Below, one piece after another: positions 4,483 to 59,171 of a stretch of 64,000 bases of DNA (position 1 is its first letter; each line of letters opens with the position of its first letter). The stretch comes from Syncephalis fuscata S228 (Eukaryota > Fungi > Zoopagomycota): the NCBI GenBank assembly GCA_025786725.1, contig JAHLTZ010000011.1, positions 124,001 to 188,000 on the forward strand, written 5' to 3'. The translations under genes were made by a program, and so were the position numbers. Under the pieces are notes generated by a model, which saw only the letters and a program-made list of their open reading frames with translations, made no database searches and was not told the origin of the DNA.

Positions 4483-7400
4483 ATGGACCGGGGAACATCG
4501 CGCAGGCAAGCTAGAGCGGATGGCCGGTTTAACGCCCTTTCTCTGCGCAACATTCTTTTAGGCGCATTTTTAATAAGCATCCAAGTGAGCGTCGGCACCG
4601 ATGCAAAATTACAACTGCCACCGAGTCATTTGTTAGACAGACGTACCCTCCCCGATGAGCATAGCAAGCCGTTTATTGTGTCAAACGCGTTCATTGCCGA
4701 ATTTAAAACTGTACCTGGTAATCTTAATGAAGTGGAAAATGAACATGATATCTTTCGTACGGCCATTAAAGACGGACAGTTTGAAATTCGTGAACGTTTA
4801 GCGTTAAAATCATTGCTAAACGCCATTTCATTTGAGGCCACTACTGAAACGGCCAATCGCATTGCCAAACTACCTATGATCAAAAGTGTATGGCCAATGG
4901 TAAGCGAGGATATTGATGGTTAAGGCGTGTATTTTTATTAATTCATTGATGAATGATAGGTGGCACAAAATCGTCCCCGTGTTCAGGTACACTCTGTACC
5001 CAATGTTCAGGGACTAAAATTCGCCCATGCCATGACCGGCGTTGACCGTGTTCGGCAGCGCTTGCAAAAGGCGGGCGAAGGCGTTAAGGTTGGCGTGGTT
5101 GACTCGGGTATAGATTACATGCACCCGGCATTGGGTGGCTGTTTTGGCCCAGGCTGTCGTGTCGCTCTGGGATGGGATTTGGTCGGTGATGACTACACTG
5201 GCAATGGTCGTAATCAGCCAATTCCCGATGCTGATCCACGCGACGTTTGCAACGGCCATGGAACGCACGTGGCCGGTATTATCGGCGCCAACGATCCATC
5301 TTTCCAGGGTGTAGCACCTGAGGTAACGTTGGGTGCGTATCGTGTATTTGGCTGCAAGGGCAGTAGTGAGACAGATGTTGTTATTGCCGGCATGGAGCGG
5401 GCCCACCAAGATGGCATGCAAGTTATCAATATGTCTTTAGGCGGTGGCAGCTCCTGGTCTGAATATCCTGATGCTGCCGCTGCCGAAAGACTGGCTCAGC
5501 TTGGTGTCGTTGTCGTGGCTTCGATGGGCAACGACGGCGATAAAGGCATGTGGGAAGCATCATCGCCTGGTCTAGCTCCTAGTGTTATTTCTGTTGGCTC
5601 AGTAGATAGCATGCGCTACCAAGCATTCGGACTGCGTGTAGATAATGAAAATCTACCACCTATGGGTAAGTTATCAGAACAGTGTAATAATAGCTACTAA
5701 TTTATTGATGAACTACAGAATATCTTAGTGATAAAGAAACACCTCTTGAATTAAAATCTGTCCCCATCACATTAATTCAAAGTTCAAGTGATCCAAATGG
5801 CTTAGGCTGCGATAGACTAAGCAATAGAATTGCTGGCAAACTAGTCATTATGCAACGAGGTAACTGCACCTTTAATATTAAGGTAAGTAACATATTAGTA
5901 CTTTATGTTACCCGTACTTACCAATGTGTATTTATATCTATATATAGGCAACCAATGCAAAGGAGGCAGGTGCCATTGGTGTATTGGTATATAACAACAT
6001 GCCAGATGACGTGTTTATTCCTAGTGTAACAATCCCCAACTCTATTCCAGTTGTTGGTCTTTCGCAGCTTAATGGTCAGCGTATCAGCAGCTATTAGAGC
6101 GTAAAGACGAAGTTACGATTACATTCCCAAATTCGCTGCTTACATTCGATAATCCGAATGGCGGCCACATGTCTCGTTTTAGTTCATACGGTCCTGGACC
6201 TGAGCTTGAAGTGAAGCCGGACGTCACAGCACCGGGTGGCTTGATCCGCTCTACCTATCCACTGCCAATGGGGGGCTACCGTACCTTGTCCGGCACTTCT
6301 ATGTCCTCTCCTTATGTGGCCGGTGCCGCTGCTCTTTACATTTCAGCCAAGGGCAAAATTTCTAATGCACCTGCTGAAATTCGCCAAATGTTCCAGATTA
6401 CCGCCAAAGCTATTACTCAAAACAATCAAGCTGACAGCGGTTTAACCTCAATTGTCCGTCAAGGAGCCGGTTTATTGGACATTGATGCAGCTATCAGTGC
6501 TACTACCCGAATTACCCCCTCGCGTATTGGACTTAACGATAGCCGACATGGCAATTTGATAAATGAAGAATTTGGACCACATACTGTCACAGTGACGATT
6601 AGCAATACACAGTCCATTCCAGTGGACTACACCATGTACCATGCCCCTTCATTGGCCATTCAAGGCTATATAGAAGGGCGTGCATTAAAAAAGCCGGATG
6701 TTTTGGGGTCATATGCCTCTGTTACCATTGATAAAAGTGAAGATGGTTTATTAGATGAAGCGTCGGATAAAAACAATGAACGTATTGGTGGCACAGTCCG
6801 CCGTATTGTCCGCTCTAATAGCAATCCAGTGTTGGATGGAGAGTCTACTAGCAGCAACTCTATTCAGCAACAATCAAAGCCCACGCTTGATGATGAAACA
6901 TTTGTACAAGAAATGGGATTGGACAAATCCGAAGATATGACAGATGGTAGCGATAAAGCCATTTCACAAGCCAATAATGCGGGCAGTTTTATGTTTAAAT
7001 TTACAGTGTCTGCTAATAGCGAGGCAGACATTACAATGAATATTCGACCACCAAATCTGCCTGAAGCAGATCGTTGGATCTACAGTGGTTTTTTTAATAT
7101 ATACGGCAGTAATCGTGATGCACTGCACGTTCCTTACATGGGTCTTTCCGGCAATTTACATGCTCAGTCTATTCTTGATCGTAATGGATTCCCCTATCTT
7201 ACTAGGCTTGTTACCGAGCCAGGTGTTGGAAAAGTGAAGCATAACGACAATCATCGTGAGAGACACACACAATGCCTCATACGACATCTAAAAAATATAG
7301 CGAATTTGAATTAAGTGAGCAAGAAGACGAACTTGATGCCGAAATGGCAGAAAGCGACGATTTTGATACTGAAGACATCTTTGATCAAGAAGAACAAGAA

Positions 7401-8150
7401 ACACGAATGGGCTTTTCTATAGACAGCAAGGAAGCTAATAATACTGTTATCAGCGATAATCCATCAGTAATCCAGCAAGATACCCGATCATCTCGACTTC
7501 GATTGCGAGTACGTTTAACACATCCAACTCGTGTACTTCGGGTGGATGTTCTTAAGATGGATATAAATGATCCACAGAGAATACCAACTAATCCTAGTGG
7601 CAGCACTATTGGTATTCTGCCCAATGCCTGGATTACTTATTTAGGTCGTCATTCCGATGATACTGACGACTTTTCAACAGATTTTACATTTGATGGCACT
7701 TACACACCACTTGGTATGGCATCCAAAACGCTGTTTACCCCCAATCAGCAGAGTGGTTTTACACTTTCTAAAGGAATTGCTGATGCCGAACGCAACACCA
7801 GCAGAATAACCACCTTACCTGATGGCTACTATCGACTCAAGGTGGTGGCACTACTGCCGTTTGGCAATGAGAACCAGCCATCCGATTGGGATGTCTGGAA
7901 TAGCCCATTGCTTCGATTGTCAACGCTTTCAAACAACGGTACTGGTCCTCAGGCGCCACGCACTAGCCCTTACGATGCGGCAGATGGTATGCTTGAGTAT
8001 AATCGCCAGGTTAGTATTATTAAACCAGCACGTTCTGTGCTCAGCATGGCGCTTGAAAGGCAGTTTCAGCGTGTCCAAAACTTCAAACAGCCGGTAAAAA
8101 AGGATAAAAACAGCAATAGTAAATCGTGGAATGGGCATGTTCCGATTTAA
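4483..8150 (+). CDS. Secreted subtilisin-like S8 serine protease with prodomain, PA domain and C-terminal Fn-like region; 3 introns and two apparent single-base frameshifts
   Basis: Catalytic triad motifs VVDSG, HGTHVAG and GTSMSSP. PA motif 'IAGKLVIMQRGNCTFNIKATNAKEAGAIGVLVYNN'. Introns 4900-4959, 5666-5718 and 5883-5947. Frame breaks near 6085 and 7265. Confidence 0.92.
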
Positions 8151-22916: not shown

Positions 22917-25385
22917 TTAGGCAAAATGGTCACGACGGCTGTCGTGATGGTCGCGCCAAGCAGCAAGTTCGTCCATTTGTCGTCTCCACCAGCGGTTCAT
23001 ACGAGCTACCGGCGTTAATGGCTTTTTATGGGATAGATATGATGCTTTTTTCAATCGGCCAGAGCAGCTTTTATTACCATGCTGACTAAATACCACATCC
23101 CAAGGATTACCACCTGCACCTTGGCGTTTTGTCATTGCTGAGTAGCGTTCGCTAGCTGATGTATTATATGCCATAGCAATTAATTCCTCTTCAGGATTAT
23201 CGTCATTGGTAGCCATTTCGTCAGTATCCATGTCAAGTTCGTCTTCTGCATCGGAATGTAATAAAGAGTTAACATAGCGCGGGAAAGTATTGCGATAAAG
23301 CAAATCAAGCACAGCGTGATATGCTTCGTCAAATATTGTTGGCTCAATATGACCCGAGGTTAGCGCATCGCGAGCTCGGCGGCGTACGCCATGATCGACA
23401 TTGACTTCGAGAAGTGCACCTTCGGCCAAATAGACGTAGTAGAACTGGCGGTAATCTTCAGCAAGCCAATCAGGCAATGGGCCATTATTGACAAATGAAA
23501 TCATTTGTTCATTTCGTTCGGTAAAGACTGAGCCAGGGCCAATGGTCATGTGGGATGGAGTACATGTAACAGGTGTACTAATACGATCACTCATCGTGGA
23601 AGAGGCACGACTTGATCGAGTTGTATGAAGTGTTGATGTCGGCGATAATGATAATGGCATTAGCGGTATTGACGTGGTGGCTGGTGACACTTTTGTGGTG
23701 GTAGCAAATGGTGTTAGATTTGCATTGGCTGATGCAGTTGATTCATCCATAGGTGGCGATAAGCAAAACGCCGGCACTGGTAGTGAAGGCATTGCAGGTG
23801 CTTCAGCCAAACGTGTAGCACGTGCACTTGCCGTGCTAAATTGCCGTGATGCAGCTAAAGATGATGTGCGTTTTGTAATGGTTATGCGCGGTGTTGTTGG
23901 ACTTGAAAGTATTGAGGCGCTGCCTTGATAAGTCGATAACTTTACGTGCTGTGCCAATTCAATCATTTCGCTTTTATGGCTATTATTGGAAATAAAACTA
24001 GAGGTATTGGAAATAGGTGATATTGGGCGAGACTGCATGGCAGATGGTGAAATGCTCGATGTCGCAAATGGTTTTGTCGTTACGTCAGCTGCCGTAGTTG
24101 CAGCTGTAGTCGTTGGAATTTCAATACATGATAAGCGTGGTAAATTCCAATCAAGTGCTACTTTTGTCGTATCAACTTCTTCAGCACGTGCTGCATCATC
24201 CGCCATATGATAGTGTTGTGGCGAAGTAGGCGCAAACTCGACCGTGCCTGGAAGGCCCAAAGCCCGCATGGCCAATGCAGTCTGCATTGCAACATGTGCT
24301 GCCTGAATTGTGCCCCATTGTTCAGCGGTGGTTTGTTCAGCCTTCAATCGCTTTTGCTCTTCGCGTTTCATTTGCTGGCGTTTAACTGTTTCCGTACGTT
24401 CTTTAAGTGCTTGATATTCTTGAATAAATCGACAATTTTCTAGAGAAAAATCAGCTTCAGCAAGCTTTTCCAAACGTCGAAATGCCGTGGGATTTTCTAA
24501 TGCCCGGTAGAATTGACTGCGTGACAATAGGCGACGTTCCAATCGTAGACGTAGTGCACGGCGTACTGGACGAACTACCGATACTACATGCACTGAAAAT
24601 AGCATGACAGCCAGCCAGCAAATGGCATCGACTTGGTGTTCAAGTGCTGGCACGCTTGTCCATGTAAAGTAGATAGGTATGATAAGCAGTGTGATAGCCA
24701 CCGTAAATTGCAAGTCACTTGCAATGTTATAGGCATCGCGTAGACCGACAAGTAGCCAGACAATGATCGGACATAGAATGGCCATAAAGAATCCAAGCAT
24801 AATGTAGAGTGGTATATATTCCCAGTTACTCCAGTTGTGATGGCCGACATCTAGCGGTACAACTCGATACCTTGTAGACAAGCACTGTACTAGAAGCAAA
24901 CATATAAGCGTACTAATACCGATCGCTGCCATAATCCCCGTTAGCGTCATGTCACCTCGAGGTGCACGTCGACGACGAAGCCAGTTCTGTTCGCGATGTA
25001 ATTGAGCACGCGCTTCGTCAGCGTTTGCTTTGGCTGCGGCAGCTGCATTGCGTGCTTTGGCACGTCGAATGTCAGCAAGAAATCGTGCACGCCAAACACG
25101 GCCCAATAACGAGACAGTCCATGCGGAAAATCCAATATAGGCCCCCCATAATGGTAAAAACGAGGGAGTCCCCGAGGGTGAGGATGCTTGAACGAGAAAT
25201 ATTGTACTAACACCTGTGGACGCAATGGCACCTACCACCGTAAGAGATACGGAGCGTTTACGTAATTCTGGTGTGTCGGGTGCAAAGTAGTAATAGCCCA
25301 TTGTTGTGACAGTATAAATGGCTGCTAGCAAATAGGCTAGCACGAGGTAGACAATACTCTCGATAGGACCGGGTTGTCGATTCAT
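22917..25385 (-). CDS. 7TM-RGS protein with a split RGS domain, intronless
   Basis: Seven TM segments, then the RGS N-half 'ALENPTAFRRLEKLAEADFSLENCRFIQEY' and C-half 'FYYVYLAEGALLEVNVD...IFDEAYHAVLDLLYRNTFPRY', separated by a ~300-aa Ser/Thr/Ala-rich insert. ATG at 25385 chosen over the upstream TTG. Confidence 0.88.
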   Translation of the reverse strand: MNRQPGPIESIVYLVLAYLLAAIYTVTTMGYYYFAPDTPELRKRSVSLTVVGAIASTGVSTIFLVQASSPSGTPSFLPLWGAYIGFSAWTVSLLGRVWRARFLADIRRAKARNAAAAAKANADEARAQLHREQNWLRRRRAPRGDMTLTGIMAAIGISTLICLLLVQCLSTRYRVVPLDVGHHNWSNWEYIPLYIMLGFFMAILCPIIVWLLVGLRDAYNIASDLQFTVAITLLIIPIYFTWTSVPALEHQVDAICWLAVMLFSVHVVSVVRPVRRALRLRLERRLLSRSQFYRALENPTAFRRLEKLAEADFSLENCRFIQEYQALKERTETVKRQQMKREEQKRLKAEQTTAEQWGTIQAAHVAMQTALAMRALGLPGTVEFAPTSPQHYHMADDAARAEEVDTTKVALDWNLPRLSCIEIPTTTAATTAADVTTKPFATSSISPSAMQSRPISPISNTSSFISNNSHKSEMIELAQHVKLSTYQGSASILSSPTTPRITITKRTSSLAASRQFSTASARATRLAEAPAMPSLPVPAFCLSPPMDESTASANANLTPFATTTKVSPATTSIPLMPLSLSPTSTLHTTRSSRASSTMSDRISTPVTCTPSHMTIGPGSVFTERNEQMISFVNNGPLPDWLAEDYRQFYYVYLAEGALLEVNVDHGVRRRARDALTSGHIEPTIFDEAYHAVLDLLYRNTFPRYVNSLLHSDAEDELDMDTDEMATNDDNPEEELIAMAYNTSASERYSAMTKRQGAGGNPWDVVFSQHGNKSCSGRLKKASYLSHKKPLTPVARMNRWWRRQMDELAAWRDHHDSRRDHFA

Positions 25386-27461
25386 AGGTTTAACGTTGAA
25401 TAAGCTGATTAATAGTTTGACATTAAAAGCTGTAGTATAAACTAACATCCAACAGACAAAAATTGCACGCAAACAAAAGAAACACAAAGCTCTAGTCTAT
25501 AAGTTGAATAAACACAATATAACAGCTCAGCGGCGATGAATCTTAAGCAGCTGAGGTATCGTTTTAAATATCGTTATTGGTATAAAGTTGGCCCTTGGTT
25601 CAATAGCACGCTTGTAAACTAACAATAATAACAACTATAAGATATTCTACTGTTTTCTTTAAGTACCGAATACTAATAGTGCTGACGAGATAATAATAAT
25701 AATAATAGACTAATGATAATGATAATGACAGAGTATTACGAAAGTGGTATAAAATAAAGCGTAGAACAAAACAAACTGGTACTTAAGCGTAAAGTGCCAA
25801 AAAGAATAGAACAAACTATATTACGGGTAAAAAGTTTGCTTATGAAGAAAAAGACATAACTGTACCGACTGCTTCTAATGGAACACAGCAAGTGGGCGGG
25901 TGGTTCGTTAGCAAAGTAAAAGAGAGTTGATATGATAACGGTGTCGTGGTGGCGGCGTCAAGTAAAGAAGGCGATAGTGGCAAGAGATGCCGTTTAGGCG
26001 GAGTGAAAAAGTAGCGCTGGAAAAGATGCAAACTTTCGTGCTAGCAAAAGGCGAGAATTATAAAAAGGCTCTGGCAGTCAGGATAGTTCGGAGTCAATGA
26101 CTCGATAAAAAGAAATAGCTTTGCGGTTTATAGAGGCCATGTGTGTTCCAAAATGCTTAAAGAGATTCTCGTTCCAAAACGTAGCTACACGTTTTCACTC
26201 CGCGGATCACATTCAAATAAGGCAACGTATTTATATCAACACATGTGTTTTTATGTTTTATATGGGACAGGTACCAATTCATTTGAATTTATGCGCACGC
26301 GCTTAGATAAATAAATTTAATAATAAGTAAAATTAGTTGTACATCAATATCTCTGAACAATAAATCGACATCGGCAATAATGGGCCAATAAAGAATGGCC
26401 AGGGATTGTACTAGGTTGCACATATTACAATAATAAGGGCTACATCTTTCAATGTAGTGGCGTTTTAAATGGGCGAGAATAGCAATAATGGTTGATCATA
26501 TCAGTATTTCAAACATTATTTCATAATAGTGGATATAGCCATTATACAAGGCTATAAAATATACATGCTATCATATAAAACACTTGGCAATAAAGCATAG
26601 TTAAATAAAATAGCCGTAATGCAATACACTCAAATAATTGGCTAATTCTAAACATTCTAGTCGCTCAATTACTCAGCCAAGATAATACTAACAACAAACA
26701 CGATTTGAAAACTTTATTTCTTTATTTAGTACATAGTAATAAATGATACAACCGTGACAAACCGTAGCATCAATAGTAAACTATTGGCTTTATACTAAAT
26801 TGAATTTAATAGTTAACTAATATACAATACGATAATATATATATATCATTTTTCTCGTCTTTACTCGCCATATCTATATTTCTTAGTGCAAAACATTATT
26901 GTCAAATAATACTATTTTCTATTGTCAAATCAATCTAAATTAAAGATAATCGACTATTGTAATTTAACTATTTAATTACATTGTTTATTATTGCATTGAG
27001 TTCTATTAAATAGTTTGAAATGCTTATAGAAGTATTTTGTGCTTTATTGTTCATTTAACAGAAATGGCTTTATAGCAAGAATGCGATGTAGTTGGCGTAA
27101 CGCGAAATAAAAGCGAGAGAATTGATGCAGACGGTACTACGATTACTGAAAATTAATGACGGAGTGCAGCGTAGTAAAGTATACTAATTAAAAAAATGGA
27201 TACACCTAGATAGGGGAAATCTAGCGCGCGCTATTAAGAAGGACAGAATGGTAAATAAGCGAGTAATAAGTGGTGATGATGGTGGAGAGGAACAGGGTCG
27301 TAATAACAAAAGAGCTGTTTGAAATCGTGTTACAATAAACAGGATAATCTATTGAGAAGCGAGACGGGTATGTACGTATTATGGTGTACACACACGCGCG
27401 CACGCATCATCAGACATGCAATATGCGTATTGATTGGACAAAATAGATAGAAGCTTTGCCA

Positions 27462-28784
27462 TTAAACCGGCGACCCATAATGCTGTCCCGTAGCATCAGT
27501 TCGTAGTGGTCTTACACGACCACCACCATTATTTTTAGCGTTATTACTAATAGCTGCTGCTGCCGCTAATGAAGCGGTCATTTCTAATGATTCATCGGTA
27601 TCTCTCGTGAGATTATTTAAAAAATTTTGCATGCATTCTTCACGACGAAAGATGTGTCCGTAAAATGGCCGGAAAAATACCAGCCCAAAGAAAAATGTTG
27701 ACGTAAATACGTTCTATAATACAACAATGCGGTTAAATAGACTGAATCTAATTAGCTAGTAGGCTTTAACTTACAAGTAATATCATTGAATAGACACCCC
27801 ATGCACTCCAATGATATTGATTTAAAATAATAGCCGAGTTCCAAACAACGCAGAATATCAAGGCAAAAGAACCAAAACATAACTCACGAAACTCGTTGAA
27901 CGCACTGCGCACATTACGAAGCTGCCAAGTGAAGTAAATGACAATAAGAGCACAAATGCCCGCCATGCTAAAGAATAAGCATTTGAAAGTTAACGTAACG
28001 GAGCAGCCGGTACTATCATCTATCTTGACGGCAAATCTAGGAATAGCACTTGATGTAATGCCGATAACACCCATGGGTATACAGAATATTAGCCAAGGAA
28101 CTACTATAGGTCGCTTTGAAAGCGATTGTTGAAGCAAGAACACATGGCGAACAGTGTATAGTCGGAATATGAGTAGTGCCAGAGTGAGTGAAGCGCCAAA
28201 ACAAAACTGCACCCAAACTATAATAATATACAAAAAAATAGTCATTAATTCGTAGTCCGATAGATGCAATGACAACAAAGTTGATAAATCACCCGTTGTA
28301 TCGCCTATTCTCCTCTCTTTTTTCACCGACTTACCCTCCCATAACGAACAAACGGACCAAAGACCCTTATAACCGAAAACGCCATTGGAATGCTGCAAAG
28401 AAGACCATTGATCAGTATTTTGATCGCTTTTATGCAATGCATCAGGAAAATCTTACTTACCATCATGCCAAGCCACCAGAGGAACGAGCCTAGTTAATAT
28501 TAATTGGTTGTATAGTAATAATAAATATTTAAAATAAAATTTAAATTAAATGTTCAATTTAGTTATTGTAAAACATTATTGTTATTAGTGGATAGTCATT
28601 GAGAATAATCAAGTCACTTACTTAAAAGGAATAGGCCCATAATAGGAACATGTTTTGCTTTAAGTGGCGGATAGTTGCGATGATAGTAAATGTAGACATA
28701 AGATGAGAAACTAATGGCAAATAATAGCGAACAAAAAAGCGTCAGCCAGATAGTTTCGGGAGTCGTAAAAACATATGCGCCCAT
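27462..28784 (-). CDS. 7TM GPCR-like receptor, paralog of 10320-12407, short C-tail, 3 introns
   Basis: 'RNYPPLKAKHVPI', 'LLIFRLY', 'LRNVRSAFNEFRELC' and 'FFRPFYGHIFRREECMQNFLNNL' align with the 10320 gene. Stop at 27462-27464. Confidence 0.82.
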
Positions 28785-34579: not shown

Positions 34580-35288
34580 ACAAGCGTCGAAGAGGGCGAA
34601 CGTCGTGAATGCCTGTAAGTAGACAAGTCTCTAAAATAGACGATTGATTCATGGCGTTTATAGCAAACAAGCAGTGATATGTGCCGTGTTGCCACCAGCA
34701 GGTCCACAACGATCGCGTGTGCTGGCTATGCTGTATAAAAGCGATCGCACACGTGAACTCACCGGACTGTATTCGATGTTGACAAAAGTATATTTAGATC
34801 GAGTATTGTCATCTGAAGAAGTGGCGCTGTTTACCGAACATCTTTCCGAACACCATCAGGCCATATTGGCCGATGGCAGCACGGTGCTGGACCGGGCCGT
34901 ACTTGAACATAATCTGCTAAGTGCATCAAGGCTATATGATTATATCTGCGTAAACGAACTGGCCCGACTACTTAATACCACAGAGACACATGCAGAGACT
35001 ATTGCGGCACGTATGATAGGCGAGGGTCGAATCCGTGGCTCAATCGACCAAATAGAGCGATTAATTGCATTTGAACGTACACCCATGGGAGAACAAACCA
35101 GAGAAGCCGAACCAACTACCGGAGCCGATGTAGGTCGCGGTGCTACACTTGAATCATCATCGGCACGTATATTTAGTCGTTGGGATGAAAGATTACAGTC
35201 ACTTTGTGCACATGTAGAAGAAATGAGCGAGGCAATTGTTAAAAAGCATCCTGAATGGGCCAAGCACCATGCTACATTACGTGCATAA
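34580..35288 (+). pseudogene. CSN4: COP9 signalosome subunit 4, C-terminal (PCI) half only; no 5' half visible
   Basis: 'VEEGERRECL|KQAVICAVLPPAGPQRSRVLAMLYKSDR', 'LADGSTVLDRAVLEHNLLSASRLY' and 'RMIGEGRIRGSIDQIERLI'. Only ~260 bp of AT-rich DNA separates it from the CUE gene stop. Confidence 0.7.
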
Positions 35289-43507: not shown

Positions 43508-46485
43508 ATGCGTATGGATGTATTTGATTTAGGTGCTGAGTCGCCGACAGAGGACGATCCTACCGCGTCCAATCTAACGATTGAAGATGATGAAGAGATT
43601 GATAGTGATGACGCTTGGGATGAAGAAGACGAGGCAAAATTTGGACAGTATAAGTTTACAAACCGTACCAAGCAATCCAAATCAGCTAATTTATCGGGAG
43701 ACGACGACGAAGACGAAGAGAATGAAGAATATGGCGAATATATGGATTTGTCGGAAATGCTTGGTAGTGGCTCAGCTACAACAAAAGACGTGTCCGCGTC
43801 AAGTGATGAAGAGTTATCAAGTGATACTGAAGACGAAAATGAACACGATGCAGAGAAGCTTGTTTTTTTGTCAATAATTTAGATCGTAGCGGAAAGACAA
43901 AGCGTGCACCACAGATAAAAGAACGCACTGAAGTGTATACAGAATCTGAATACAATCTTACACTACGAGATTCATCAGCCACAGGCAAACTCTCACTAAA
44001 CGATCTATACGGTGCATTAGAAGATCAGTCGGGATTAGCATCGTTAAAAAAATCGCTTAAAGCCATAAAAAAAACCGAGCCTATTGCATCTACTTCTACC
44101 AGCAATACTGTTGGTACGCCTTTGGCCGCACCACTTGCCAAGCGTATTCAACAGCGCTTTGATCGCCAAGTGGCCTATGAGGAAACAACAGAACAAATAA
44201 GCCAATGGGAACCAGCAGTGAAACAGAACCGCGAGGCCGACCATGTATCGTTTGTAGATCGAACCGTATCCAACTACAAGCCAACCAGCGAGGCTATGGC
44301 TGCACAGTTGAAACCCACAACAGATTTAGAGAAGCAGATTCACGAAGCACTTATCAAAGGCGGTTTACGAGAAAATGAGATAAAAGAACAAGAAGAACTG
44401 GCTTTGAATCAATTATCTATTGAAGAGGTAGCTATTACTATAATGAAGCGATACTATTTATTGATAACAATTGATTTATTACTAGGTTAAAGCACGTCGT
44501 GATGAACTTCGTGTACTTCGTGAACTCATGTTTCGCGAGGAACGTAAAGCTAAACGAGTTAAAAAGATTAAAAGTAAAGCATATCGTCGATTGCGCAAGA
44601 AAGAACTTGAACGTCAGAAACAAAATGAATCAATTAATAATCCTGAAGATGCCGATGAATTGCTTAAACAAGCAGAAATTGCCCGTGCTAGAGTAAGTTA
44701 CAAATAGTATTAATAGCCAATAGTTAATGGTCTATTAGGAACGTATGACACTACGCCATAAAAATACCGGAAAATGGGCCAAAGAAATGATGCGCCATGG
44801 AGGTCAGAATGCCGAGGTAAATAGAACAACATACTATTAAGTAATAATATATTAATAGATGATATCAATTGTAATATAGACACGTCAAGCAATAATGGAA
44901 CAATTGGATCGACATGCACTATTGAAACAGAAAATAGCCGGAACAATAGAGAATTCCGACTCTGATGTGGATGAACAATATTCCGATACAGATTCCGATC
45001 TATCTGACGGTGCAGTGATGGAACGAGAGAAGCGTAGAGCATTGGATTCATTATCTAAACTGGCCACCAATGATAGTCAACCGGATACAGATCAAGTATC
45101 AAAGAAAGGCGTATTTGCCATGAAGTTTATGCAAGATGCTATGAAACGACAAGCAGAGGAGACACGTCGATTAGCTGAAGATGCTCGTCTTGATCTTGAA
45201 CGTATGGATGAAAGTGATACCAATAACGATGAAGATAATAATAATAATAATCTACAACATGGTAAAATGGTGCAAGGCAATCCAGGTCGTCGTATTTTCG
45301 ATCAAACCGATGTAAATAGATAGTTATTGATCATTAAATATTATTATTAATACTAACATTAATGTTAATGTAGCAATTAGATCAAGAGACTGAAAAGACT
45401 GAGCATATACTACAGCAGCTATCTGTTAATAAGGTAGGTCAATGTTATGGTTATACTGACTAATTATTCACTCATTACTATTACTGTAGAAGGGCACTTC
45501 AGTTCGGTTATCAGCTGCGGTAGAAGTGAATACAAAGACTAAATCAAAACATACTAGTAAACGTGTAACTGAAGCAATTACCAATAAATCTGTAACAGAA
45601 ACAGATAATCCATGGCTTGATAGTTCAACGGCCAGTAAGCAGACGGGTAAAGCACGAGCAGTTATTACCAAAGCCGATAAAGCCAGTGATAAATTGAAGC
45701 GTGTTAAACAACATACGTCAACCGCTGATGCCAAGAGTCAACTGGATGCCAACATCGATGTAGATATCACGTTGGAGAGTACATCTTTATTGGTATCAAC
45801 ATCAAAACAGCAGCCAATAGATATTGATAAATTATCAGATGAAAGTGATACTGAAATACAAAGCACAGTCAATCCCAATGCATTAAAACAACGTGAATTG
45901 GTAGAACGAGCATTTGCTAATGATCATGTGGTTATGGAGGTAATTAGTATATAAATAATAACATAAATAATAGATATTAATAATAGATATTAATAGGAAT
46001 TCTATAAAGAAAAAGAAGCTGAAATGAGTGAAGAAGAAGGACGAACGAAGGATGATACTGATACCATGCCAGGTTGGGTAAGTAATTTATTTATTTATTT
46101 GTATTTGTATTAATACCATCATTTATAGGGTCAATGGGGTGGTTCTGGTACTAATACTACTAAACGGAAACCAAAACAACCATCATCATCATCATCATCA
46201 TCGTCTAATTATAAAAAGGCCCGATCAACGATTATTCGTGGTGTAGAAAAGGATAAACGCCGTGATGCGAAATTAAAAGAAGTCATTATTAGTGAAAAGG
46301 TGATTAAAAAGACGAAGAAATACGCAGTGGATGCCGTACCCTTTCCGTATAAAGATCGTGCACAATATGAACGATCATTACAACAACCATTGGGACCAGA
46401 ATGGAATACAGATAAAGTATTTAAGAAAACTATACAGCCTAGATTGGAGAGTAGAAATGGCATGGTTATTGATGCATTGGAATAA
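43508..46485 (+). CDS. UTP14: U3 snoRNP-associated protein Utp14 (SSU processome)
   Basis: 'PLAKRIQQRFDRQVAYE', 'AKRVKKIKSKAYRR', 'ERMTLRHKNTGKWAK', 'MPGWGQWGG' and 'VPFPYKDRAQYERSLQQPLGPEWNT'. T-run frameshift near 43865. Confidence 0.93.
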
Positions 46486-51634: not shown

Positions 51635-52183
51635 ATGGTGTATAATTAAATATGCCATAGTTGTATGCGTTTATTTTACTTTACTTTTCATTGCTATATA
51701 AACACCAATAGCATTATTGAGCTAATAAACTACAATATACTCTTGTTGCACAACGATATAATTGTTATTAAAAAAGCATTTAGTGTAAATTGTGCATTTG
51801 CTTAAATATTCTTTTGGTTTATTTATATTTATATTAAGGTGTAGTTGTAAATCAGTTAAAATGGTATAAAAAATGAATATTAAGAATATTGTGGTCTAAA
51901 TCAATTCCGTTCGAATTAACTCAATTAATATTATACATATCGGCAAATAGTTTATCTCAATAGTTAATTATCTAATTTAATTCTCCAGGGCAGTAAATCT
52001 TTTTACCATCAATTGTAATGATTTGAGTAATTAATGTTGAAATCATTATTACAATAAACATTAAGTAATATTATTATTATATTTCATAAAACGATATAAT
52101 TATAACAGAAATTGTGTCAGTAATAATATTAAACATTTAAATAAATAATGTAACATACTATTTGATTTCTTTGGAACATTTGA

Positions 52184-52778
52184 CCAATTATTATTGTTGT
52201 TAGTCATGTGTACAAAAATTGATCGAATATTAAAAAAGTCATTGGTCATGATTCCATGTCATTCCATATTAATTGTTGTTGCATCCATGTACAATATGGA
52301 TATTGCATTTAATGATCTCTTTTATTTTTCGACCTTTTACTGTTGTGTTTTGAGCATATTTGCAATGTAAGATACTTATCTATGGTGACAAGAAGGTAGA
52401 AAGACTAGCATTTCTGATGTTCACTATTGTTTTGAGCATTTTGGTATCAACTTATAGGCGCAATTATTTGCCAACCATTAATGAAGCAAATGACCTTCAC
52501 CATATGCAATAATGATAGGTTGAGTGTCTTCACCAGGAAGATCTTGTGGCGAAACTGTAACCAGAATATACGGCATGCCGTTGAGATTACTTGAACAGGT
52601 GTTTATGTAAAATAAGAGAATAAAGACTAGGGATTAAATATGTTTTTATTGCTGTTCAAATACGCATGCTATTTATATTGTTATATTTGGCATTATCAGA
52701 TAATATATTATTGAATAAAAAATAAAATGGCAATAGGAAAAGAAAGTGAAATAAATAAATAAAAAATATAGGAGTCAA
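52184..52778 (+). repeat. ~590-bp direct repeat, copy A
   Basis: From 'ccaattattattgttgttagtcatgtgtacaaaaattgatcg' through 'aaataaaatggcaataggaaa', near-identical to 57855-58458. Confidence 0.92.
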
Positions 52779-54269: not shown

Positions 54270-54277
54270 TATAAATA
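54270..54277 (+). promoter_or_regulatory. TATA box of the micro-exon peptide gene
   Basis: TATAAATA ~140 bp upstream of ATG 54413, followed by a pyrimidine-rich leader. Confidence 0.5.
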
Positions 54278-54412
54278 GCTTGCAAAATATACACAACCAA
54301 CTGCAATATCATCATTACACTCTACTTCTTGCTATACACACTCTACTCTCCACTATACCAACCACACTCTACTATCTCTTTTATTTGTTTGTATTAACAA
54401 ATTAGTATCACC

Positions 54413-56227
54413 ATGAAGCTTTCCATTGCCGTCGTTTGCACCGTCGTTGTGACTTTGACAGCCGCTACAACCATGGTTGATGCTAAACCAACCATGGTGG
54501 ATGATAAACCAACTTTGGTTGGTCGTGGTATGTTTTAATGACAATAGATATAGCGTATTATTGTGCTTACTAACAGTATTTCTAACTTAATAATAATAGC
54601 TCGTAAGTTGCATTATATATTAACTAACTATTCACTAATTATGTACCATGTATTATGCGTATAAATGACTTAATATTAATAGTGGGTAAGTTGTATTATA
54701 TATTGACTGACTATGCACTAATTATGTATCATTTATTATTGGTATAAATAACGTAATATTAATAGAGCGTAAGTTGTATTATATATTGACTAATCATGCA
54801 CTAATTATGTACCATGTATTATGCGTATAAATAAACTAATATTAATAGCATGTAAGTTGCATTATATATTGCCTGACTATATACTAATTATGTATTATGT
54901 ACTATGCGTACAACACGCTTAATATTAATAGGTTGTAAGTTGTATTATATATTGACTGACTATGCACTAATTATGTACCATGTATTATGTGTATAAATAA
55001 CGTAATATTGATAGGGCGTAAGTTGCATTATATATTGACTGACTATACACTAATTATATATCATGTATTATGTGTATAAATAACTTAATAATAATAGGGC
55101 GTAAGTTGCATTATATATTGACTGACTATACACTAATTATGTACCATTTATTATGTGTATAAATAACTTAATAATAATAGCTCGTAAGTTGCATTATATA
55201 TTATTTATTTTATTTTGAAGAGCTTGTGAGCCCCGCTGCGCATAATTAAAGAATTTGCGCTGCTTCCCACTATATTTGGACTTTTCCAAACTTTTAACGG
55301 GTGGACTGCCACGTTTTTGCGCAAAATCTGGTCCATATAGATTTTACACGGGGGCCATCTTCCTTTAAATGGTGCTACACAGCACTATTCTCTTGAAGTT
55401 GGTCCCAATTGGTTTTTCCTCGGCTATTCTGGCCAAGGTCTTGTTTCCGGACCTACTTATTGGTTCTGGTTTGCAATTTGTTAACTAGAGAAAACGGGGG
55501 GGGATTTTTCATTAAGGATTGGTTCAAACCTCAGTTTGAACCCGGAGCCTTCAGCTCGGGAGACGCTGCCTTACCAACTGGGCTAGCAACGTCCCCAAGT
55601 TGCATTATATATTAACTAACTATTCACTAATTATGTACCATATATTATGCGTATAAATAACGTAATATTATAGGGCGTAAGTTGCATTATATATTGACTG
55701 ACTATATACTAATTATGTACCATGTATTATGTGTATAAATAACGTAATATTAATAGGGCGTAAGTTGTATTATATATTGACTGACTATATACTAATTATG
55801 TACCATGTATTATGTGTATAAATAACGTAATATTAATAGCATGTAAGTTGCATTATATATTGCCTGACTATATACTAATTATGTATTATGTACTATGCGT
55901 ACAACACGCTTAATATTGATAGTGTGTAAGTATTATTATATATTGACTGACTATGCACTAATATGTACCATGTACTATGCGTATAAACAACTTAATATTG
56001 ATAGGGTGTAAGTTGCATTATATATTGACTAATTATGCACTAATTATTTACCATTCATTATGCATATAAATAACGTAATATTAACAGGTCGTAAGTAGTA
56101 TTATACGTTGACTGACCACATATTAACTATGCTATTTACTGATTGTACCGATTATTTAATATTAATATATTGATGACTTATAAATTAATTATATGACATA
56201 TAATATATATTTGTAAATACAGCATAA
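54413..56227 (+). CDS. Secreted 53-aa prepropeptide encoded by 16 exons, fourteen of them 3-nt micro-exons: MKLSIAVVCTVVVTLTAATTMVDAKPTMVDDKPTLVGR-ALEPCWRPRRPLWCP*
   Basis: Exon 1 is 54413-54527 (gtatgt donor, phase 1). Micro-exons start at 54600 ctc, 54683 tgg, 54766 agc, 54849 cat, 54932 gtt, 55015 ggc, 55098 ggc, 55181 ctc, 55674 ggc, 55757 ggc, 55840 cat, 55923 tgt, 56005 ggt and 56088 gtc; each is flanked by YAG and GTAAGT. The last exon 56223-56227 reads 'ca taa'. Confidence 0.8.
54590..56120 (+). repeat. 83-bp tandem array (80-nt intron + 3-nt exon), ~14 units, interrupted by a SINE
   Basis: Approximate unit: gtaagttgcattatatattgactgactatacactaattatgtaccatgtattatgtgtataaataacgtaatattaatag + NNN, recurring with an 82-83 nt period. 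Confidence 0.97.
55204..55596 (-). mobile_element. tRNA-derived SINE (~393 bp) with 18-bp target-site duplication
   Basis: The minus strand starts GGGGACGTTGCTAGCCCAGTTGGTAAGGCA (A box), contains CCGGGTTCAAAC (B box) and ends in an (AAAAT)n tail. TSD aagttgcattatatatta at 55186-55203 and 55597-55614. GC content is much higher than the flanks. Confidence 0.9.
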
Positions 56228-57854
56228 TCAATGGTTTCAAGACATCAGCATTGGTAGTGCAATCAAACCACTATTCCAATACACTATAGGTATATATTCG
56301 GTGAAAATCAAGATCATTTGACAACTACGCCGTCCAGTCTATTTATATATCAAGTTTTGGCCAATGCTCCGGTTTAGCTAGTTTTTAATCAATGGAATCA
56401 TTATTTTATCAACAGGCTTGCAATTAGTTGTTTCTATTCAACTGTGCAAGCTTATAGTAATAAATTTATGGTTCCATCTTAACTATATCTATAATCATGT
56501 TCTATTTGCATCCAATAATTGCCAAGTATTAATCAAATAGTTAAATTAACAAACTGTGTATGATTATATCATGTAAGCTATAAGCATATATTAGTATGGA
56601 TAGTAGCAAAGCTATTATTATCCTATAACCAAATAATAGTATGCTGAAATTAGCATAAATATGTTTTTTAATAAAACATGGTAACAAAGTATAGGATATT
56701 ATAAAACAAAATAAATAGACAAATCAAGTACGTGAATAGTGATAACAAAACTATACTGTATGCAATTGACCAAGAGTGATGAACGAAATAAATTAAAATC
56801 TACTAAAAGAATGCAGTTAGCAATAAACTTTTAGCTTTTATTAGTATAGCTTTTACAGTTTACAATATTAATTATATACACGGACATATGGTATATGTAT
56901 ACAGGATAGATATGTACAGTGCAATAATAATGATAAATAAATAGTTTATCACCATTGACACTCACTACCCAATTTCATCAACAATAAAACGAATTGTTGA
57001 TTTAAATGCGTAACTATTATAGTTATTTAACTGCCAAATCACATTAAACAACCAATAATATACTTAATATTATTGAAAAGTTATTTTTATTTAGTTAATA
57101 AAGATATCATAAGATTTAATACAAATCAAGTGGTTTAAATAATCCGCCACAGCACCCTCTTAAGCTTCTTTTGCCATGTTCCACGACTTTTCTAAATTAT
57201 GACACTGGAACAACTATCGCAATGTTTAGGAATGGATGCTAAAAGTAAACTGTTTTAGTTTGCCAATGATAAATGCCATGTTGACGGCATTATTTTGCAT
57301 ATCTTCACTCTTGCTTGATACACCAACCAATTAATTTGAGTTAATCAAAGCAATAATACTTTTATGTAATTCGGAATTAATTAATTGCTATATCTGATAA
57401 TTGAAACGCTCTAAACCAGTCTGATTTTATTTGTTAATTAAATTTAAATTTAAAAAATATTTATTAGCTAAATCATTTTTATTTTACATTACACTTTCTT
57501 CATCTTGATAGCTGTTTTAACTACTAGTTCAATACTATTAATACTAGTTTTACATATTATATTTTTGTATTGTATTTGTTAGTTGCATTTGCCACCAATA
57601 TATTGTTGGACATATTTTGGCAAATAGAACACGATCGGCATTACTGTTAATATTGCTACAATTAACTAAATTACGTAAATAAAGTTTAGATTAAATTTGT
57701 TGTATCTATTGTGATTATTTTTTCAAAATCCCCAATTCTACTTTAAGTCTCATATTTGAGTTTTCTAAGCAAATCGGTTTCAATTGAAAACATGTTGTCA
57801 TGCACAAGAAACATAGTTATAATGTTTTATTTAACTACTTTGAAATTTATGAGG

Positions 57855-58458
57855 CCAATTATTATTGTTGTTAGTCATGTGTACAAAAATTGATCGAATA
57901 TTAATAAAAGTCATTGGTCATGATTCCATGTCATTCCATATTAATTGTTGTTGCATCCATGTACAATATGGATTATTGCATTTGAATGATCTCTTTTATT
58001 TTTCGACCTTTTACTGTTGTGTTTTAAGCATATTTGCAATGTAAGATACTTATCTATGGCGACAAGAAGGTAGAAAGACTAGCGTTTCTGATGTTCACTA
58101 TTGTTTTGAGCGTTTTTGGTATCAACTTAATAGGCACAATTACTTTGCCAACCATTAATGAAGCAAATGACCTTCATTATATGCAATAATGATAGGTTGA
58201 GTGTCTTCACCAGGAAGATTTTGTAGCGACAGTTGTAACCAGAATATACGGCATACCATTGAGGTTACTTGAACAGGTGTTGATGCAAAATAAGAGAAAT
58301 AAAGACTAGGGATTAAATAGTGTTTTTATTGCTGTTCAAATACGCATGCTATTTATATTGTTATATTTGGCATTATCAGATAATATAATACTGAATAGAA
58401 AAATAAAATGGCAATAGGAAAAAAACTGTGAAATGAGTAAATAAAGATGTGGGAGTTA
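57855..58458 (+). repeat. ~590-bp direct repeat, copy B
   Basis: Near-identical to 52184-52778 with scattered SNPs and 1-nt indels. Confidence 0.92.
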
Positions 58459-59171
58459 AAATACAGTAGAAACATTAAAGTCATTTAATACTAAAGTTGT
58501 TATTATAGAGCATACTACCAATAAATTACTGAGTGCAATAGGAAATACAAGCAAAGCCAATGTTTTTTAAAGACAAGTGTAGTCATAGAAGGTGTCATTG
58601 TTAAAATAATGAAACATAGTCATATTCTAGACGATGAAGCAATAGACCAATAGTTTATATGAATGAATAAATAGTGCGATGTTAATGCCAGCAGAAACAT
58701 GCACTGTATATTCAGTACAATGGCAGTGGTGAACCAAGGCCTTCTGATTTCTTACCACCTATTATTATAAAAAGCCAAACTGACACTGTCGCATCAACAT
58801 TATAATTAAATCATAACATTTTATTGTAAGTAAAATGAAACACTATTTAATATTTATTTTATATTAAAAATTGTGTTGATTAATTGACACTGATTGATTC
58901 AATCAGAGTTGATACGACACTACTTCAACAAATAACACTTCTTAGTAGTAAAAGCTGATCGACGGTTTATTGTTTATTATTGATTTTTTTGTCCCAGTTT
59001 AAAAATAGGAATTCAAAGTACAATAGCTATATATATTAAATTGGGCACTTGAACATTTTTCTCGTAAAAAAAAACTCGCATCGAATCCTTCTAGACTTTA
59101 CTTGTCGAAATATATGGTACAATTTATGTATTTGTTGGAAGGTTGATACATTTTTATTTGCACTCTCACTA

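Follow-up and report, generated by a model that had tools for sequence, protein, structure and literature searches.

In Tuber melanosporum, the NACHT-ankyrin (nank) genes contain multiple codon-sized (3-bp) microexons, which, according to reviews, are alternatively spliced (Iotti 2012, as cited in PMC4986451 and PMC10197012). The micro-exon genes (MEGs) of schistosomes have exons of 6 to 81 nt, mostly of 15 nt, and introns of 0.1 to 5 kb (PMC10526429, PMC4350168). Twenty-seven 3-nt exons have been reported in 26 genes of Coprinopsis (PMC12230235), and APC11 of Arabidopsis carries an isolated tiny microexon (PMC4674806). An earlier note on the DNA studied here had held that no gene of serial 3-nt exons was known, a claim that the Tuber genes contradict, and that schistosome micro-exon genes have longer exons, which is indeed the case. 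The DNA is from Syncephalis fuscata, a mycoparasitic zoopagalean fungus (PMC10386755), and the window, i.e., the whole stretch that was analyzed, is 64,000 nucleotides long. The fungus is not known to cause disease in people, animals, or crops. A protein encoded in the window is recorded on contig JAHLTZ010000011.1 of S. fuscata assembly GCA_025786725.1, and the 22.5 kb surrounding it match the window without a difference. Judging from its sequence, the array gene in the window is very probably a member of a family of S. fuscata secreted-peptide genes.

Architecture of the array gene in the window

The fourteen 3-nt exons proposed earlier were borne out with the triplets listed for them (42 nt in total), as was a phase-1 frame in which only 2 nt of the terminal exon, which begins at 56223, precede the TAA stop. 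The gene and its surroundings are laid out as follows.

4960 to 8150: subtilase with an Fn3-like domain
22917 to 28437: 7TM-RGS receptor and a second 7TM gene
34644 to 35288: PCI-domain subunit
43933 to 44490: Utp14
52159 to 52778 and 57828 to 58459: dispersed 620-bp repeat, two copies in direct orientation and 93% identical, one on each side of the array gene
54270 to 54277, + strand: TATA-like box, common to the array paralogs and missing upstream of processed copies
54308 to 54412, + strand: putative 5' UTR, its start (38 nt below the TATA-like box) placed at the onset of homology of two processed copies (P0010 of L006, and L011)
54413 to 54527, + strand: exon 1, 115 nt (38 codons plus 1 nt, ending in phase 1), leader and propeptide
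54528 to 54599, + strand: intron 1, 72 nt, GTATGT donor, at the same position in six of six arrays
54600 to 55183, + strand: array block A, eight 3-nt exons (first bases 54600, 54683, 54766, 54849, 54932, 55015, 55098, and 55181) with 80-nt repeat introns between them
55184 to 55673, + strand: intron 9, 490 nt, one repeat intron enlarged by an insertion
55674 to 56090, + strand: array block B, six 3-nt exons (first bases 55674, 55757, 55840, 55923, 56005, and 56088)
56091 to 56222, + strand: last intron, 132 nt, two introns fused through a 19-nt deletion near 56167
56223 to 56480, + strand: terminal exon, 2 coding nt, stop at 56225 to 56227, then the 3' UTR
56459 to 56464, + strand: AATAAA, with the poly(A) site probably near 56480

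Exon 1 contains a 21-nt tandem duplication (54468 to 54521). The motif AG-NNN-GTAAGT was found 15 times in the window, compared to 1.1 ± 1.0 times in shuffles, and 14 of these matches lie behind exon 1. The introns of the gene are 72, 80 (11 introns), 490, 79, and 132 nt long; the length of 80 nt claimed before thus held for 11 of them and failed for the others. In most introns, which are 80 nt long, the sole AG is that within the donor. The G+C content was 67% in the triplets and 23% in the surrounding introns, and the per-base difference was 0.62 between triplets versus 0.13 between intron bodies. Ordinary S. fuscata introns (n = 10, from annotated housekeeping genes) measured 53 to 90 nt and had the same donors as the arrays. 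The branch-like motifs described previously are present as CTRAY but lie 45 to 56 nt upstream of the acceptor, a large distance for a fungal branch point, and are at most candidates for it. Rfam and ARAGORN gave no match in the region of the array gene, a bacterial promoter scan returned nothing useful, and no deposited gene model was found to cover the gene in database searches with exon 1.

Invariant splice sites beside variable exons, on which the earlier note had leaned, were seen, but 63% of all intron columns are invariant in the window gene (P of about 0.16 for the four GT/AG columns). Splice-site invariance inside this gene alone is poor evidence, and its strength comes from the paralogs. 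That the GT/AG invariance is not significant in the window alone is one point for reading the locus as a noncoding 83-bp minisatellite with chance splice-like motifs, or as an assembly artefact; that the same motif search also returns CRISPR-like arrays is another. The paralogs described below make this reading hardly credible.

The exon 1 product has a basic start, a hydrophobic core, and a small residue before the cut and is signal-peptide-like by eye. The predicted peptide, the translation of which is consistent with the junction codon counts, would have about 15 residues and be Pro/Arg-rich, with two Cys and two Trp. All 15 mature codons had been proposed to be split by an intron, and the layout of exons and phase agrees with this, but the start of the mature peptide and the processing of the window copy are uncertain because Gly-Arg stands where most family members have the dibasic Arg-Arg.

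Paralogous arrays

Paralogs, for which exon 1 had been suggested as the bait, were found: with its natural 41-codon ORF as the query, the leader search returned at least 19 annotated proteins, all of S. fuscata, and no homologs outside this species within the search tools' limits of length and shared words. Five of the loci examined proved to be arrays of the same build as the window gene, with 17 to 40 internal exons each. The six arrays have leader, phase, and terminal exon in common and lie on five large contigs. Exon lists hand-curated from splice motifs give the six intact arrays a total of 158 internal exons. Of these, 149 are 3 nt long; eight measure 6 to 33 nt, are multiples of three without exception, and sit toward the 5' end; and a single exon in L002, inside a G run, has 2 nt and may be a sequencing slip. 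Internal exon length was thus divisible by three in 157 of 158 cases and showed no drift, whereas intron lengths range freely across the arrays from 54 to 86 nt. L007 has GG where the terminal acceptor is expected, and one unit of L003 is without an acceptor.

When units were located by their intron bodies alone, AG and GT were kept in 26 of 26 units of L007 and 22 of 22 units of L010, the arrays that have diverged the most, at 0.70 identity to the consensus; in a decayed copy without an ATG, at 0.66 identity, splice sites were kept in 1 of 7 units (the profile had been trained on intact units and somewhat favors those). The decayed copy lies at L008:2740-3950 on the minus strand (and in L009), at a distance of 3 kb from P0008, which is intronless. 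The contig ends L008 and L009 are 97 to 98% identical and are perhaps haplotypes.

U1 snRNA pairs across the exon-intron junction, and a G-ending exon offsets a weak donor. Weak or GC donors followed 14 of 46 G-ending exons versus 1 of 111 other exons (Fisher P = 8e-8; P = 1e-5 after collapsing duplicates), and 14 of the 15 donors lacking the G at +5 or starting with GC were preceded by a G-ending exon, which is the compensation expected of donors in use. Junction codons were counted singly and unordered, with exon-order shuffles as the control. Stops at phase-1 junctions numbered 1 of 150 (7.1 ± 2.1 in the shuffles), the single stop sitting at the last micro-exon of L002, and Cys codons numbered 18 (7.8 ± 2.1 in the shuffles), with an even count in each gene. 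Exon base composition fitted phase 1 best (log-likelihood of -610 versus -669 and -691). As deposited, model P0016 requires an exon of 3 nt flanked by two canonical introns. The splice sites and the frame of the family are under selection. The paralog tests, the decayed control, the donor compensation, the match between P0008 and L007 (see below), and the occurrence of six array loci on five large contigs all speak against a minisatellite or an assembly artefact.

That the gene grows and shrinks codon by codon through its repeat units, as had been proposed, is backed by the six paralogous arrays, the decayed copy, and the intronless processed copies. Unit copying is visible in the introns at 54852 and 55843: they have a single-nucleotide difference and are preceded by identical triplets, as expected if an exon and its following intron were copied together. 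The last intron records the loss of a unit, for there the 19-nt deletion took one micro-exon (the 15th) together with both splice sites and left the frame unchanged.

The products of the family look like secreted, short, often Cys-paired peptides. Paralog peptides gave no significant match in Pfam, in the PDB, or by fold, except for an SVWC domain in P0019. A model of one paralog is a helical hairpin with paired CX3C motifs (pLDDT of 82), the best TM-scores of which were to vicilin leader peptides, but with E above 7. The same leader also heads longer proteins (P0019, P0018, P0007, and P0015), with a single von Willebrand C domain in P0019. The most likely targets of the peptides are the host fungus or microbial competitors, a role that we consider about as probable as not; the earlier designation as an effector gene is tentative.

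Intronless copies and the state of the window copy

Six family members are intronless, and in these the leader runs directly into the mature region, with the junction at the position of intron 1, the stop at the position predicted from the terminal exon, and the introns precisely absent. Four copies (P0017, P0010, P0008, and L011) have a short A run about 16 nt past the AATAAA; homology of the processed copies begins, where checked, below the TATA-like box. A putative 14-bp target-site duplication with 2 mismatches flanks P0017, and none that was convincing was found for P0008 and L011. P0006 and P0018 have no transcript-defined ends and have kept their flanks. In L006:8690-11165, P0017 and P0010 stand in tandem with a nearly identical 3' UTR and 670-nt flank and with very different mature regions, as though one cassette had been replaced from another cDNA; the L006 flank also holds a truncated leader copy. 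Intronless members with both promoter and downstream flank occur at L005:1-1000 and L012:9850-10700, and these are candidates for in-place loss of a whole array of introns through cDNA recombination.

In an exon-by-exon comparison that included P0008 and L007, P0008 matched a run of 14 successive 3-nt exons in array L007, with their order kept, at 35 of 42 nt (0 of 20000 shuffles). Of the 13 junction codons, 8 were identical, 2 synonymous, and 3 changed, and 4 of 4 Cys were kept. P0008 and L007 are sisters on the exon-1 tree (98/98); L007 is a relative and not the parent of P0008, and the match spans 14 of its exons. The colinear match amounts to a natural cDNA and means that splicing of an array of this type joined successive micro-exons in their order. 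P0018 shows a similar match, between its front part and the initial exons of array L001 (2 of 20000 shuffles); no intronless copy matched the triplets of the window gene (P of 0.8 or more), and no parent of P0006, P0010, P0017, or L011 was found among the six arrays. The P0020 locus was considered as a parent and rejected, being a 97 to 98% duplicate of L008.

An order of events that starts from intronless genes, with a mobile introner-like element then adding the introns singly to a contiguous coding sequence, seems to us quite improbable and, for the A-tailed copies, is largely refuted. It could draw on L005 and L012, which retain promoter and downstream flank, and on the absence of a root in the tree, but intronless copies with mRNA-defined ends and A tails are scattered among the arrays: on the 3' UTR tree, three of the intronless members cluster with L002 and the window gene (100/97), and a single clade of intronless copies was rejected (AU P = 8e-8 and 1e-4). 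Moreover, the intron unit is confined to these genes among 295 kb of S. fuscata sequence, the array intron is less folded than its own shuffles, and the copying of an exon together with its following intron, seen at 54852 and 55843, is at odds with single intron gains.

It has also to be considered that the arrays are spliced mostly with skipping and that the full 15-residue product is rare, the output being a mixture or the leader only. Symmetric exons permit skipping, none of the 78 possible skip junctions of the window gene gives a stop, and the Tuber nank microexons are described, in the reviews cited above, as alternatively spliced. On the other side, 14 successive exons are retained in unbroken order in P0008, adjacent exons are those for which Cys enrichment and stop avoidance are seen, and skip junctions in L002, L007, and L010 give 4 to 9% stops; stop avoidance between adjacent exons, set against this rate, points to selection on full inclusion. 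Predominant skipping is improbable, although less so than an intronless ancestry.

Two features of the window gene had escaped the earlier note, the 15th micro-exon lost by deletion and a SINE-like insert in intron 9. The insert and its relatives are located as follows.

55204 to 55596, - strand: SINE-like retro-element, 393 nt, with a structured G+C-rich head and an A-rich tail
55186 to 55203 and 55597 to 55614: target-site duplication of the element, 18 bp, perfect
L001:11255-11569: further copy
L002:10195, 11508, and 13104: three further copies
L003:10748-11148: further copy

The head of the element is strongly folded (z of -4.3), with no match by ARAGORN or Rfam that would mark it as tRNA-derived. 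Six dispersed copies were found among 295 kb of S. fuscata sequence, and all six lie antisense, about 17 to 19 nt past the donor of a micro-exon, every copy having a target duplication of its own; the element is strongly site-preferring. An AG-NNN-GTGAG look-alike, possibly a cryptic exon, lies inside the window copy (55221 to 55230), 39 nt past the donor, and this copy differs from that in L003 by a 4-nt micro-inversion in a hairpin.

The insert bears on whether the family is real while the window copy is silent or decaying, with its intron 9 sixfold longer, its dibasic site changed, and its peptide of 15 residues. The 490-nt intron, the Gly-Arg site, the deleted exon, and the absence of an annotated model would fit such a state, and the repeat units are young, which leaves little time for visible decay. 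The 14 of 14 units, the promoter-like box, the frame, and the poly(A) signal are, however, all intact, SINEs also occur in L001, L002, and L003, and the intronless L011 has an equally short tail. A silent copy is the most serious of these alternatives and still an unlikely one; we infer that the window copy is probably expressed.

Proposed mechanism and comparison with described systems

In the mechanism that we propose, a conventional first exon gives the leader, and the mature peptide is stored as 3-nt exons, each of which completes one codon with two bases and opens the following codon with its third. Between these exons lie short introns of the ordinary spliceosomal type, tandem copies of a single unit. 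Since two spliceosomes cannot flank 3 nt, the introns would be defined across themselves and removed one by one, by the same argument as that made for APC11 (PMC4674806), and exon size need then not limit splicing. With all exons multiples of three in one phase, duplication, deletion, conversion, and skipping of units would keep the frame; each unit event would add or remove one residue and, in phase 1, recode the neighboring junction, three bases being the smallest unit for frame-neutral gain or loss. Spliced mRNAs may occasionally be reverse-transcribed and reinserted, or recombined onto the gene, to yield the intronless members.

A scan for tandem arrays of this type, suggested earlier for this and related genomes, was run on metagenomes with three successive AG-NNN-GT-type sites as the criterion and automatic screening and gave at least 120 loci. 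Among the matches listed, at least about 70 are arrays unrelated to Syncephalis, and none of the loci listed resembles Syncephalis sequences. At least 61 loci of moderate G+C content have fungal-type introns of about 65 to 77 nt and up to 79 variable 3-nt exons and, read in phase 0, contain 6 stops in 1123 among the matches listed versus 72 expected from column composition. Phase-0 arrays include L032, L093, L114, L108, L029, L053, L126, and at least about 55 more. NACHT-type and ankyrin exons adjoin arrays L029 and L053, and an HET exon adjoins array L126, the intron type of which links at least 20 loci; in the L093 group, a GTPase-like exon without a Pfam match recurs beside the arrays. A low-G+C family (L013, L022, L050, L061, and others) has 3-nt exons and 90- to 100-nt introns, with no stops in phase 0 or 1 in at least twelve loci. 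Protein kinase exons adjoin arrays L022 and L013, two low-G+C arrays lying just upstream of kinase exons, and these exons presumably resemble those of arbuscular mycorrhizal fungi. Where the triplet is invariant, the match resembles a CRISPR array and is spurious; L014, L059, L121, and L132 were rejected as exon arrays, having a constant repeat of about 37 nt and unique spacers, apparently CRISPR.

It is possible, though less likely than not, that one-codon exon arrays are a recurrent, convergent generator of diversity at biotic interfaces across fungi and serve as a peptide library in Syncephalis. If so, skipping would give many in-frame variants per gene, recombination of units would rewrite the peptide residue by residue, and reverse transcription would fix chosen variants as intronless genes. 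With up to 40 consecutive 3-nt exons, the arrays are a limiting case of gene architecture and a natural substrate for the study of intron definition, splicing order, and the minimal number of exon bases for the spliceosome, and they offer a route by which repeat recombination can change a peptide residue by residue in evolution. Deposited gene models miss them almost entirely, so that a candidate antifungal or antimicrobial peptide family of a mycoparasite has been hidden, and the metagenome scan suggests similar hidden arrays in immune-type genes of other fungi.

Full-text searches gave no account of Syncephalis microexons and no description of 3-nt-exon arrays for Zoopagomycota or for any secreted peptide, in a literature to which subscription journals contribute little, and did not confirm a rust-fungus precedent. 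Isolated microexons of 1 to 3 nt, as in Coprinopsis and APC11, show that the spliceosome copes with such sizes, probably via successive intron definition, but they occur about once per gene, in contrast to the runs of 14 to 40 in Syncephalis. Conotoxin-, defensin-, and alpha-hairpinin-like families combine a constant leader and a dibasic site with a variable Cys-paired mature peptide encoded by ordinary exons; the Syncephalis family shares leader, dibasic site, and variable Cys-paired peptide with them, with no significant sequence or fold match. Like schistosome MEGs, the Syncephalis genes have a (putative) signal peptide, transposon insertions, variable secreted products of a parasite, and most of their coding sequence, here the whole mature part, in small symmetric exons. 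Unlike in those flatworm genes, the exons are of 3 nt, the introns are tandem copies of 70 to 86 nt (about 80 nt), and the homologs are all from S. fuscata. With the Tuber nank genes they share membership in a fungal family with serial 3-bp exons (14 in the window gene and 149 in the six arrays) and the theme, as far as the reviews report it, of microexons held to make a protein more diverse where organisms meet; the Syncephalis design may be regarded as an extreme form of that of the truffle receptors. In the ascomycete, again according to those reviews, it is the sensor region of a large receptor inside the cell that the microexons vary, whereas the Syncephalis arrays, in Zoopagomycota and without sequence homology to nank, encode a whole mature secreted peptide; no NACHT or ankyrin match was found with Pfam in the paralogs, the array being preceded by a 38-residue leader only. 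The Syncephalis arrays are, moreover, in phase 1 and have processed intronless copies, which may further set them apart from nank as the reviews portray it. The array gene thus works like Tuber nank genes and schistosome MEGs and belongs to neither; what is new is a whole secreted peptide from codon-sized exons, in phase 1, in an early-diverging fungus, and with processed copies.
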